Origin: Orbicella franksi | Lineage: Eukaryota | Direction of reading: 5' to 3' | NCBI GenBank assembly: GCA_964199315.1 | Contig: OZ116699.1 | Coordinates: forward strand, 13,082,001 to 13,146,000 | Length of the DNA: 64,000 nucleotides | Part shown: one piece after another, positions 1-6,833 of the stretch | Position numbering within the stretch: the stretch's first letter is position 1 | Layout: each line of letters begins with the position of its first letter | Translations under genes and position numbers: made by a program | Notes under the pieces: model-generated | Seen by the model: only the letters and a program-made list of their open reading frames with translations | Database searches by the model: none | Told to the model about the DNA's origin: nothing

Positions 1-621
1 TTGACATCGACACTGACACTGGGACAATACGAGTTAAAAACAGCCTCGATCTGGAATCACAAAAACACGTGGATGATTTACTGTACACTCTGACAGTTGA
101 AGCATCGGATAGAGGTCAAGTATCACTTAGCAACGATGTGCTGGTTACCATAGAAATAAAGTGTGTGAACGAGTTCCCGCCAAAGCTACAACATTCCGAA
201 AGTATTTACGTGAAAATCCCAGAAGACACTGCCATTGGCGCGAGAGTTGCAGATATCAATGCGACTGATAAAGACTTTGGCCTAGATGGAATACTCACTT
301 ATTCGATAATTAGTGGCAACGAAGACAATAAGTTCGATATCAACCCCAGCACCGGTATCATAACTGTTAAAAACGAGCTCGACTATGAAACTGTCGTGAG
401 ATACTCTCTTGTGATACGAGTAAGCGACAACGCTCCACCGGCTCAGCGGCTTTCCACTGTTGCCAAGGTAACAGTTCGGTTGACGAACGTGAATGACAGC
501 GGAGGTGTGGATGTGTTGATAGAGGATGTCCTTAGCAGAATAACGCCGCCAGGGGATCCTGCTGATGTCGCAGGGCTACCAACGAGTAGCCCGATATCTG
601 TGGTATTGCTGTATGAAAATG
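1..621 (+). CDS. Exon encoding the last extracellular cadherin (EC) repeats
   Basis: ORF 69-668 extends upstream to the window edge. Typical EC motifs ([35 protein letters not shown]). Donor G|GTAAGT at 621/622. Confidence 0.92.
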
Positions 622-3600
622 GTAAGTTACAGATTGGAACCAGGGGAGAACGGGCTAGGCTTATATAACTATGACAATAGAAACTTTCATTAGAAGTGAA
701 GAAACAGAAACTATTGCGGAACTTTATCACCAGTTTAAGTGAACAAAAATAACGAATCGATGATTAATTAGATTGCTGAATTTTCCTCTGTTTTCTTCCG
801 GATGAGAGCCAAGACCTGACGGTTACAACTGACGAATAATTCGGTATTGGAGTGTTAGGGTAACGTTCATTAATACTTTGGAAGTGGCAAGGCTATATGT
901 GATACCGACTGGATAAACCGATACGGTGTACTTAACTTGAGACTAGGACAGAGAACAAACTTAAATGGAAGCTGATCTATATGTTTGTCAACAGGAAACA
1001 AAGTAAAGCTCTCCTCTGATGACAGCAGACTGACATTTGACGACAAGTCCGAATCACGTGGTCTTTTCACAGTTGTCCAAGCTGACGACAAGAAGATTAT
1101 TAAAGCAAACAGCGCCGGATTGCTGGGTCAAGGTGTCCTCATTGTTCGTGTTCACAACGTTTACAATGTCCGCGTCACAGTAAATGTGGTGGGTTACTCT
1201 TCGCTACAGTTAACAGCTGTTCCTTATCCAGTCATTGAAGGATCGAATGCCACTTTGACGTCGTTGAAGCGTATAGGAAGTCTCCATGGAAACGTCCAGT
1301 TGGCTGCTCTCAAGCTATGCCTCGTTTTGACGGATAAGTCCACCACCGATGTTTCCACGATGACGTCGACATCATTTCGTGTCGTAAGCAATGACGTAGG
1401 AGTTAAAGTTTCCATGGATTCTATTCCTAAGAACGTGCTGTTTATAGACAGGACGAGCACAAGCGGGTACATGAGCTTTCGTGGGCAGTTCTCCGGTAAA
1501 GAGTCGGGGAATCTTGTTCTCGAAGTTTCAACGGAAGTAATAACAGTTAATGAAATCCTTGCCGTGGAAATAATCGGGCTCAGGAATCAAACTCTTTTGG
1601 GTCCAGTGTTGTCCACGCAGGCCCAGGTTCAAGTAGACTTTGTTATGAATGATAGCTCTGTGCTTAGAGTGCAAAATTTCTCCGCAATCTCTGGACTTGT
1701 AGCATTTAAAATCAGTCACGAAAAAGCAGCTTCGGTTGACCGCGTGACGGGGGTTGTTATGCTGCTGTCAGACTATCATGACTTGGTGACCGTGACAGTC
1801 ACTCCGTTTCAGGGTCTTGGAAAACCAAAGCATGTGCAATTGTATTGTAACACAGTCCCACCAGTGGGTGGTGTTGACATTGGACAGGAGTACGGCCCAG
1901 CAGTACCAGCATTAATAGCTAACCAGAGAGTTACCATTCCTTTACGCGTGAATCCTGGCAAATCAAAACTTCTTGCCTTTGATTTGAAGATTTTGTACGA
2001 TGATCGCCAAGTTCGGTTTGTTGAACTGAAAAGAAGCAGTGCCTACTCCCACACTAAAGGACAACTGCATTTAGCTGATGTGACAAATCCCGATGATGCA
2101 AGTCCGCATGTTGCTGACCTGGTTTTCGATTCATTAGTCGACGGCGTGCTTAGCATCCAAGCCTCGGTGAACATGTTAATTGACAAAAGGCTGGGATTCA
2201 TTGGGAACTTTGCACCAGCTGTGACGTCATGCAATGCGCTACCGCTGGGCGATGCTAACGCGGATTGTGTGTTCGATATCCGGGACGCTGCTTTCACAAT
2301 GGCATATAGTCTAGCACAGGAAAAGAACTTCGTCGGTGAATTTGAGCAAACGATGTCAAAAAGCACGACTGATACAATGGTAAGTATCTTATATTAGTAA
2401 AAAAAAAATGTCAGAAGATGTGAAAAGAAAGTACTTTAGAAGCTTAGATAGCATATAGGAAAGTCCGGGGTCTACTGACATACATATAACAGTTTATTTT
2501 GATTCGAATTCGTTTATGTTTTTTTTGATCCAAAATAGCAGCCAGGAAGGTGTTATTCGATTGTATACATGTGTCTATGAATTTTAAGACTCTCTGTGTC
2601 CCTTAGTTCTCTTAGAGGCACCATGATAAAATTAGAAATAGTTAACAAGCATTTTCTTTTTGCTCAAATCCTTTTGTTTTCTTTCTTTTTTTTCTTAAAG
2701 CAACAAATTATGGACTTCAATCTCAATGGAGTCGTAGAACGAAATGACGCCTATCTGCTAGCTCGTGCGAATATGGACATGGTGCGATTCGTTCGTTCCC
2801 TTCACGTGAACTTCCCTGATCACCAGAATAAATCAACAGATTGCGCACTTGAAGTAACAGCCAAGCTAAGCACAAGAGATGGAAAGATGGAAACAGATTC
2901 AAACACGAAAGTGTACTTCGAATTTGCCAGCAGGGAGAAGGTCTTGAGCTTGCAACTTATGGGCACCTCATTCGACTCCGGAGAGCTGATAACAACGTAC
3001 GATAACCTGAACGAATTATTTGGAGGCATCGTGAAGGCGGAGAGTCGAGACGAAAGTTTTCATGTGATGGCTAAAAACTCCAAGATAGAAATTTCAAACA
3101 TGGGTTTGTCAATGATTCAAGTTACCCAGGATGCTCTGCGCCAGGCAGTAGTGACTCCGCTGTTCAAGTTCTCGCGCGTTCCAATGTTCTCTACAACACT
3201 CCAAGTCCAGTTGTCACCAAATGCTGATATGGTGATAAGGAGTGGCCATTCATCTCAGTTGACGGTCAACGTTACAGAGTCCTATGCAACATGTCAAGAT
3301 CCACCTGATACGAAGAACGTCATGTTTGTCTTTGAAAACGATTTTACCGAAGTCGAAGGCAACGAAGACTCTTTTGCAAAAACTATTATTACGGACTTAA
3401 CGGCGAGATTCCCATGGGCGAAGATTGGTAACATGAGATTTGCACGCGGAAGCATACTGGTTTATTTTGACATCACAACCCAGACATCCCGGATGGACAA
3501 AACTCTCGTTGCATTATGGGATATGTTGAAGTCAGGGTATACTGTGCGTGTCAACAGCAATGAGTATCAAGCGCAAAAAGTCATGCGCGTAGACGGGGAG

Positions 3601-6600: not shown

Positions 6601-6833
6601 GCGTAACAGTGACATCATTGACCTGGGTTATTTAAAATTAAATTTACACTAGGACCAAAGAGATCTCTTTTTCTTCTACAGAAGCAGCCCAGCTGTTCTG
6701 TCCGTGTGGCGCTGTGGCTCATTTCCAGTGCTCTGCTTGCTGCAAACGTGGTTACTGTGGCCGTGATTGCCAATCGAAGGACTGGCGCCACCATAAGAAC
6801 ACATGTGAATCTGAACAGGTTTCCAGTGTTTAA
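1..6833 (+). CDS. Giant coherin-type cadherin, 5'-partial (about 1,398 aa visible): cadherin repeats, BIG/TMEM132-like region, cohesin, dockerin, SEA-like domain, TM, cytoplasmic Ubl-like domain and MYND finger. Exons <1-621, 995-2379, 2701-4462, 5557-5835, 6682-6833
   Basis: The frame is open from base 3 ([19 protein letters not shown]...). Cadherin Ca-binding motifs are present (LDYE, VNEFPP, ATDKD, NVND). Donors: GTAAGT at 622, 2380 and 4463, GTTAGA at 5836. Acceptors end at 994 (CAACAG), 2700 (polypyrimidine+AAG), 5556 and 6681 (polypyrimidine+CAG). Phases 1,0,1,1 all match, and the spliced length from base 3 is 4197 nt = 1399 codons ending in TAA at 6831-6833. Confidence 0.88.
995..2379 (+). 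CDS. Exon encoding BIG/TMEM132-like beta domains, a cohesin-like domain (about 1897-2205) and the first dockerin Ca-loop (2251-2286)
   Basis: [33 protein letters not shown] resembles cohesin strands. [14 protein letters not shown] matches the dockerin DxNxDxxxxxxD loop. Confidence 0.8.
2701..4462 (+). CDS. Exon encoding the second dockerin loop, a SEA-like domain, the TM helix (3661-3729) and the Ser/basic-rich cytoplasmic region
   Basis: [13 protein letters not shown] (2713-2751); [10 protein letters not shown] (from 3439); [23 protein letters not shown] followed by RKRIKSRK; donor C|GTAAGT at 4462/4463. Confidence 0.85.
5557..5835 (+). CDS. Exon encoding a predicted ubiquitin-like (beta-grasp) cytoplasmic domain
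   Basis: Strong polypyrimidine+CAG acceptor. Phase matches both neighbours. [24 protein letters not shown]...VFLFQD gives a beta-beta-alpha-beta pattern. Confidence 0.7.
5948..6397. mobile_element. Non-autonomous TTAA-targeting DNA element (Kolobok-like), in the last intron of the cadherin
   Basis: Perfect 11-bp TIR GGTCATTCCAC / GTGGAATGACC, flanked by TTAA at 5944-5947 and 6398-6401. RR termini with a TTAA TSD fit Kolobok. Confidence 0.7.
6682..6833 (+). CDS. Terminal exon encoding a MYND-type zinc finger (not in the ORF track)
   Basis: Translates as (E)[49 protein letters not shown], containing the YC-x3-CQ-x3-W-x2-H-x3-C MYND signature. The acceptor TCTCTTTTTCTTCTACAG is in phase 1. Confidence 0.88.

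Follow-up and report, generated by a model that had tools for sequence, protein, structure and literature searches.

An expressed coral gene for a very large membrane protein that joins cadherin repeats, cohesin- and dockerin-type modules and a MYND finger

Cohesin–dockerin pairs are among the strongest non-covalent protein joints known, and they have been studied almost wholly in bacteria. A stretch of 64,000 nucleotides from the coral Orbicella franksi (assembly GCA_964199315.1, contig OZ116699.1, positions 13,082,001 to 13,146,000 of the forward strand; hereafter the window) raises the question of whether an animal can carry both modules in a single adhesion-type receptor, and what such a receptor might do. 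A sequence-only reading of its first 6,833 positions had proposed five in-phase exons that splice into one open reading frame (ORF), with extracellular cadherin (EC) repeats at one end and a MYND zinc finger at the other. We analysed window positions 3-6833 on the + strand and conclude that they form the 3′ end of a coral gene that is expressed and strongly conserved, encodes a very large type I membrane protein and starts upstream of the window. The architecture of the protein is secure; the function of the receptor is put forward as a proposal only.

Exon structure, transcripts and conservation

The window DNA is eukaryotic, with about 40% GC and no runs of N. Stop-free stretches of the + strand in frames 3, 1, 1, 3 and 3 encode the peptides of exons E1 to E5 and, together with a small additional exon, E3b, give a spliced in-window model of six exons and 1440 codons. 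The transcribed features are as follows.

3-621 (as far as the window reaches), + strand: exon 1 (E1), encoding the end of a cadherin repeat, one full repeat and a linker; donor G/gtaagt at 622
995-2379, + strand: exon 2 (E2); acceptor caacag/, donor ATG/gtaagt
2701-4462, + strand: exon 3 (E3); acceptor cttaaag/, donor AC/gtaagt at 4463
5195-5320, + strand: exon 3b (E3b), 126 nucleotides, 42 codons, phase 1-1, with a conserved SLPPGF...NDITVE motif
5557-5835, + strand: exon 4 (E4); acceptor caacag/, donor AAG/gttag
6682-6833, + strand: exon 5 (E5); acceptor tctacag/, stop codon TAA at 6831-6833
6834-9345, + strand: 3′ untranslated region (UTR), at least 2.5 kb and unspliced in contig L011

All five exons of the sequence-only reading and their coordinates were right, with canonical GT-AG junctions, but E3b had been overlooked. 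This exon was first detected through P0024, an ORF-level homologue from another species that reads through its short intron. The conserved peptide of P0024 matches window frame 1 at 5188-5337, the splice sites there define E3b, and its inclusion leaves the reading frame unchanged. Stops that would end read-through of the introns are present at 4585-4587 (TAA) and 5838-5840 (TAG). This gives annotators the exact boundaries, six exons in all, at the 3′ end of the gene.

We searched JGI metagenome contigs with the 22-nucleotide spliced E4/E5 junction and recovered two, L011 and L012. L012 aligns to 2808-4462, 5195-5320, 5557-5835 and 6682-8108 at 98.5-99.8%, joining exactly 4462/5195, 5320/5557 and 5835/6682, and its 736-amino-acid ORF agrees, but for 5 substitutions, with the six-exon model from residue 705 onwards, ending at the stop codon at 6831-6833. 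L011 makes the 5835/6682 join and then continues unspliced to 9345, colinear with 6682-9345 at 98.4%. Searching with the L012 ORF found P0248, a product of 1100 amino acids on a Logan contig (L013) from another species, which is colinear with model residues 329-1440 (BIG region to MYND) at 64% identity in one ORF. It is gapless at every junction, including the intron that splits the dockerin, where it crosses E2/E3, and it carries the MYND finger (zf-MYND in precomputed Pfam annotation). E3b is present in both L012 and P0248.

The proposal of in-phase junctions thus held, with transcript support for four of the five joins (E2/E3 from P0248; E3/E3b, E3b/E4 and E4/E5 from L012). The E1/E2 join, which no transcript covers, is backed by conserved GT-AG sites and phase in five loci and by single spanning ORFs in distant homologues. 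Transcripts that never reach 6682-6833 had been named as the result that would overturn the model; L011, L012 and P0248 all use the 5835/6682 join.

The gene structure recurs across species. Exon 3 has 40 ORF-level homologues at 99% to 36% identity, and exhaustive HMMER searching gave 288 relatives of exon 2. In six genomic loci (L002-L007) the exon order is preserved on a single strand, with most or all of the six exons present, and extra EC ORFs lie upstream in orthologous loci. In L002 and L004-L007, GT-AG sites stand at the homologous place for nearly every junction, in phases 1, 0, 1, 1 and 1, with introns of 242-2991 nucleotides; the E3/E3b junction of L002 could not be resolved because P0024 reads through the short intron there. 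In L003, the most divergent of the six, E3b was not detected and the E4/E5 junction, the only one that could be checked, is conserved. Across 27 exon-4 ORFs, conservation begins and ends precisely at the exon boundaries. In three relatives of about 30% identity (P0043, P0049 and P0054), a single ORF runs from the last cadherin repeat through the transmembrane helix, which validates the E1/E2 and E2/E3 continuity. Downstream on the same strand at these loci, L008 and L009 have exons for both ubiquitin-like (Ubl) and MYND modules; L010 shows only the Ubl-like exon before its contig runs out. The ratio of nonsynonymous to synonymous substitution (dN/dS) over the Ubl and MYND region is 0.06-0.19 in six species. 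Bacterial contamination or recent transfer is ruled out, since spliceosomal introns interrupt the modules, which share one ORF with the cadherin repeats.

Two side observations concern the transcribed region. P0236, a public ORF of 139 amino acids at 99% identity, passes from the middle of exon 4 straight into sequence matching 5948-6094 in another frame; this join (window 5835-5950) reflects a deletion allele or else a faulty assembly of that sample. The 3′ UTR also contains an inverted repeat, with arms at 7612-7668 and 7719-7774 of about 57 nucleotides each, approximately 79% complementary and about 50 nucleotides apart, which appeared as reverse-strand self-hits of L011 and L012.

Domains on both sides of the membrane

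The domain order proposed from the sequence, namely EC repeats, BIG-like region, cohesin, dockerin, SEA, transmembrane helix, disordered tail, Ubl and MYND, was borne out by Pfam, profiles and models, and a beta-sandwich between dockerin and SEA is an addition to that list. Downstream of the cadherin repeats, the features are the following.

About 995-1850, + strand: BIG-like immunoglobulin (Ig) region, suggested by weak profile evidence only
1861-2205, + strand: cohesin module, from family Pfam matches and the fold of the homologue model
2239-2379, + strand: first calcium loop and helix of the dockerin, at the end of exon 2
2701-2784, + strand: second calcium loop and helix of the dockerin, at the start of exon 3
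2788-3273, + strand: extra beta-sandwich (Ig/FN3-like), model residues 199-362, all-beta, with a predicted local distance difference test score (pLDDT) of about 90
3295-3615, + strand: SEA domain, MUC16-type fold on the family model
3652-3726, + strand: single transmembrane helix with a basic stop-transfer sequence (RKR), the sole hydrophobic peak in the chain
3727-4462, + strand: Ser-rich cytoplasmic tail (20% Ser), from composition and motifs, to the end of exon 3
5557-5835 (exon 4), + strand: ubiquitin-like beta-grasp domain, beta-beta-alpha-beta...beta; AlphaFold2 pLDDT 78, predicted template modelling score (pTM) 0.66
6696-6806 (exon 5), + strand: MYND zinc finger, Pfam zf-MYND (PF01753) at 27.8 bits against a cut-off of 22.7

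Structure predictions covered exon 4 and a contiguous family representative, P0043. The AlphaFold2 family model (P0043 residues 370-875) was built from a 34-row alignment that included pieces of the window and reached pLDDT 88 and pTM 0.80; the window is 28-39% identical to it by domain, and mapping onto it gives the domain coordinates. On the window exons, Pfam returned Cadherin and zf-MYND only and NCBIfam gave no match, as did phmmer with exon 2 against the PDB. Cohesin, dockerin and SEA are therefore assigned at the level of the family and on the homologue model rather than by direct Pfam matches on the window protein. The sequence-only reading had made its case depend on the cohesin, dockerin and MYND profiles. 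That for zf-MYND matches directly, whereas Cohesin and Dockerin_1 have no direct Pfam match but are matched by family profiles.

Two stretches of exon 1 match Pfam Cadherin (PF00028; E 9.9e-30), and Cadherin_C, the catenin-binding domain of classical cadherins, had no match in exon 3, L012 or P0248. EC repeats and cohesin share a single ORF in P0043, P0049 and P0054. Among 17 exon-2 homologues scanned with Pfam (E <= 0.1), Cohesin was found in 5, Dockerin_1 in 4 and Big_2 in 2, and Cohesin exceeded its cut-off (24.1 bits) in the homologues P0042 (24.9 bits) and P0053 (87.6 bits); where Cohesin and Dockerin_1 score above their cut-offs, they do so at homologous positions. In protein-atlas feature searches, exon 2 yielded leads to Big_2, dockerin and cohesin (0.84-0.91), and nothing usable came from the exon-3 ectodomain or P0248. 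Residues 1-114 of the model have the cohesin fold: the best 13 VIA matches, at Z 10.2-12.3, are cohesins without exception, aligned with a root-mean-square deviation of about 2 A over 104-109 residues, one two-module alignment excepted, and with a Foldseek probability of 1.0. Over this domain the window is 35% identical to the model.

The dockerin is split by the 2380-2700 intron, and both of its loops retain D/N at positions 1, 3, 5, 9 and 12, the calcium-liganding pattern. A profile of the whole dockerin matched dockerins in 22 of 22 cases in the PDB (best E 6.6e-6), and six of the seven PDB matches of the exon-2 homologue profile were dockerins. Model residues 124-197 superpose on 2ccl_B with Z 8.5 (62/62 residues aligned, 31% identity), and P0043 matches Dockerin_1 (PF00404) at 25 bits against a cut-off of 22.9.

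The extra beta-sandwich matched generic Ig/FN3 structures only. Model residues 370-477 match MUC16 SEA domains with VIA Z of 10.1, 9.8 and 9.0 and the TMPRSS6 SEA domain with 8.0. A candidate autoproteolysis Gly-Ser at 3448-3453 (GSILV) is located at the SEA beta2-beta3 turn (hairpin 421-422 of the family model), and both residues are unchanged across 22 sequences with identities as low as 24%. An exon-3 profile run against the PDB gave matches to transmembrane segments only, among them those of ErbB2, and none to SEA. The transmembrane segment is also helical in the family model.

As a side observation, giant relatives of 3000-8000 amino acids (P0045, P0047, P0050, P0052, P0069 and others) contain as many as 8 separate stretches that align with exon-2 residues of about 5-350. 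Two giant relatives were scanned with Pfam, giving Cohesin, Dockerin_1 and Ig_TMEM132 in P0053 and Dockerin_1, Ig_TMEM132 and Cadherin in P0062. These giants form a large, undescribed pool of multi-cassette proteins.

On the cytoplasmic side, the Ser-rich stretch between the transmembrane helix and the Ubl domain spans about 290 residues and, judging from its sequence, is probably disordered. It contains a conserved motif, SP-[LIF]-x-L-SP, at 4192-4206. The Asp that would turn this into a CtBP-type PxDLS motif (PLDLS) varies: 16 of 32 orthologues have D and the rest N, G, E or H, which rules out a conserved CtBP-type motif in the tail. Exon 4 was assigned to no sequence family by Pfam or NCBIfam. 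Its Foldseek matches in the PDB and Swiss-Prot are nearly all Ubl, UBX, RA and FERM-F1 domains, with a few staphylococcal superantigen-like proteins, at E 4e-4 to 2e-2; the best is the SPATA1 N-terminus, with a TM-score of 0.76.

The MYND finger has all eight zinc ligands, and its C-x-C...C-x2-C...C-x3-C...H-x3-C pattern is kept in 9 loci. Elsewhere in the family zf-MYND scores 25.5 bits in P0248 and 22.5 bits, just below the cut-off, in the long ORF of L012. A MYND regular expression had no match in 247 earlier-collected proteins; P0248, added afterwards, has one. The chain ends in S-S-V (window 6822-6833), a class I PDZ-ligand pattern (S/T-x-V) that is shared, as SSV, STV, SAV or TVV, by every one of the eight coral-clade C-termini read, those of the window, L002-L007 and P0248.

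Known relatives and possible functions

Until TMEM132, choanoflagellate and sponge proteins were regarded as the only eukaryotic ones with cohesin domains, according to PMC6030884, which cites Nichols et al. 2012 for the coherins, proteins that combine cadherin and cohesin. The suggested kinship with coherins is upheld by the presence in one chain of EC repeats (Pfam) and cohesin (family Pfam matches, fold Z 12.3), with membership taken by domain definition. Like coherins, the coral protein has cadherin repeats and cohesin in one type I membrane protein, with a BIG-type Ig domain beside the cohesin; it departs from them in its module order and in having, besides, a full dockerin, a SEA module and the Ubl-MYND tail. 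The family would extend coherin-type cadherins from sponges and choanoflagellates to cnidarians.

TMEM132 is likewise a single-pass, adhesion-type protein with a cohesin homologue and BIG/Ig domains, and the giant exon-2 homologues P0053 and P0062 carry Pfam Ig_TMEM132; TMEM132 Pfam domains had no match in the window exons or close homologues. The orders differ, with BIG, cohesin and dockerin in the coral protein and conserved region, cohesin and BIG1-3 in the TMEM132 type. In contrast to the coral protein, TMEM132 has no cadherin repeats, SEA or MYND, and according to PMC6030884 no dockerin is detectable in it; that paper also describes a dockerin homologue as undetectable in vertebrates.

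The resemblance to bacterial and archaeal systems is close at the level of single modules. The cohesin reaches Z 11-12 to type I, II and III cohesins, the dockerin has the two calcium loops, and 2ccl_B, to which it aligns at 31% identity, is the Clostridium thermocellum Xyn10B dockerin. AlphaFold DB includes prokaryotic proteins with cohesin followed by dockerin in one chain; a search of its clusters gave only prokaryotic cohesin and dockerin proteins and no eukaryotic family member. Unlike these, the coral modules stand in one animal membrane protein, are broken by a spliceosomal intron and have no enzymes or scaffoldins attached. With them the family would offer a transcript-verified animal protein with tandem cohesin and dockerin under strong purifying selection.

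As in MUC1, MUC16, TMPRSS6 and TROP2, a membrane-proximal alpha/beta SEA fold comes right before the transmembrane helix. The MUC1-type self-cleavage motif is G/SVVV, and the coral G-S-[IV]-[ILV]-V at the beta2-beta3 turn matches it. Unlike other SEA proteins, the coral ectodomain is not mucin-like and has no Pfam SEA match, and its cleavage is predicted only. The finger resembles those of ETO/MTG8, BS69/ZMYND11, DEAF1, SMYD, ZMYND10 and PHD2 in its zf-MYND score above cut-off, eight ligands and YCG..CQ..DW..H...C core, and differs from them in its C-x-C first knuckle and in its setting, a transmembrane receptor whose C-terminus it forms behind a Ubl domain. A full-text search of the available literature found no paper that pairs cadherin with zf-MYND or describes this domain set, in agreement with the earlier statement that no described cadherin of this full architecture was known. 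The Ubl, MYND and PDZ-type end together would make up a previously undescribed cytoplasmic output of a cadherin-related receptor.

We consider that the observations as a whole are explained best, and with somewhat better than even probability, by a real expressed gene whose single chain bears force as an adhesion or mechanical-link receptor; that role is the most likely one, ahead of a transcription switch. The cadherin array would extend outward from the cell, and the membrane-proximal cohesin–dockerin pair would form a calcium-dependent, force-resistant protein–protein joint, perhaps serving as an internal clasp or as a link between neighbouring molecules. Self-cleavage of the SEA domain at the invariant Gly-Ser is probable and would leave two subunits, held together non-covalently, that could separate when put under tension. 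On the cytoplasmic side, cortical scaffold or chaperone-type partners may be recruited by the Ubl domain, by the MYND finger, which binds peptide motifs, and by the PDZ-ligand end. The S/T-x-V end suggests, as a motif, that cortical anchoring fits at least as well as nuclear signalling. In corals, the receptor would be a concrete candidate for mediating mechanical coupling or adhesion signalling.

Several points weigh against a force-bearing receptor. Pfam Cohesin (PF00963) did not match exon 2 (E <= 1) or P0248 (E <= 0.1), Dockerin_1 did not match the window exons or P0248 (E <= 0.1), and SEA (PF01390) did not match any of 22 family members (E <= 0.1); the calls for these three domains come from family profiles and from the model of a 33%-identical homologue. 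The first knuckle of the MYND finger is C-x-C across the family and not the usual C-x2-C, and the distant homologues L008 and L009 lack the PDZ-type end, their chains closing with …KY. SEA self-cleavage, cohesin–dockerin binding (in cis or in trans), MYND partners and PDZ binding are all predictions from motifs.

The cohesin and dockerin might instead be non-binding relics of an old BIG-cohesin-dockerin cassette, with the protein as a passive coat or glycocalyx component. The E2-like cassette is repeated up to 8 times in the giant proteins of 3000-8000 amino acids; P0053, the sole scanned giant with both modules, has cohesin then dockerin by Pfam; and the coral modules are too diverged for Pfam. 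Relics would not, however, be expected to keep the full D/N liganding set in both dockerin calcium loops or a cassette conserved from 99% to about 30% identity, and the pTM of the multi-domain model suggests a fixed arrangement. On balance we hold a passive spacer to be unlikely.

A more specific version of the adhesion receptor would make the clasp and the self-cleaving SEA domain a mechanosensor, in which tension opens the clasp, parts the SEA subunits and alters binding by the Ubl-MYND tail. We judge this somewhat less likely than a passive spacer. If true, animals would retain a working cohesin–dockerin joint among parts not previously seen together. In the extreme form of such a mechanosensor, the freed tail would take a signal to the nucleus.

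Less likely again is a Notch-like adhesion-to-nucleus receptor, in which SEA cleavage and shedding would be followed by an intramembrane cut and the Ubl-MYND tail would recruit nuclear co-repressors. The SEA fold with its invariant Gly-Ser, the Val-rich transmembrane helix, the basic patches and PLDLS in the tail and the presence of a MYND finger speak for it. The MYND fingers of ETO, BS69 and DEAF1 bind co-repressor peptides, and fibrocystin reportedly undergoes Notch-like processing; vertebrate fibrocystins are not known to contain cadherin, cohesin, dockerin, SEA or MYND parts. The transcriptional control that the sequence-only reading had envisaged would follow from the MYND domain alone, yet many MYND proteins are cytoplasmic (SMYD, ZMYND10, PHD2 and USP19), and no result supports a conserved nuclear localisation signal or intramembrane cleavage. 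The PLDLS Asp is conserved in only 16 of 32 orthologues and the conserved S/T-x-V end suggests membrane PDZ scaffolds, and these two features weaken the nuclear-signalling reading.

Very improbable is a separate downstream gene for the Ubl and MYND exons, with the long ORF an artefact of in-silico splicing: phase compatibility would be the only support for the join if there were no transcripts, and prokaryote-style gene calls give each exon as its own ORF, but two independent transcript contigs from two species (L012 and that of P0248) join E3, E3b, E4 and E5 in one ORF and refute it, and conservation stops exactly at the predicted junctions.

Other features of the window

Further along the window, an intronless rhodopsin-type G-protein-coupled receptor ORF lies on the + strand at 23066-24022 (Pfam 7tm_1, E 8e-29). 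A 7tm_1 ORF is also found downstream of the orthologous gene in L003, but on the opposite strand, so that synteny of this ORF between the window and L003 is possible.

Mobile elements are also present. A Myb/SANT-like ORF at 31076-32071 (+) adjoins a DDE_Tnp_4 transposase ORF at 32262-33620 (-; E 4e-40), and this pair is the two-gene layout of a PIF/Harbinger transposon. At 52933-54872 (+), three successive ORFs in differing frames, the last with a hAT dimerisation domain, look like a frameshifted hAT transposase remnant. The window also encodes, all on the + strand, an ankyrin-repeat ORF of 470 amino acids (48369-49778), a short C2H2 zinc-finger array (55922-56233) and a THAP-domain fragment (38805-39116).

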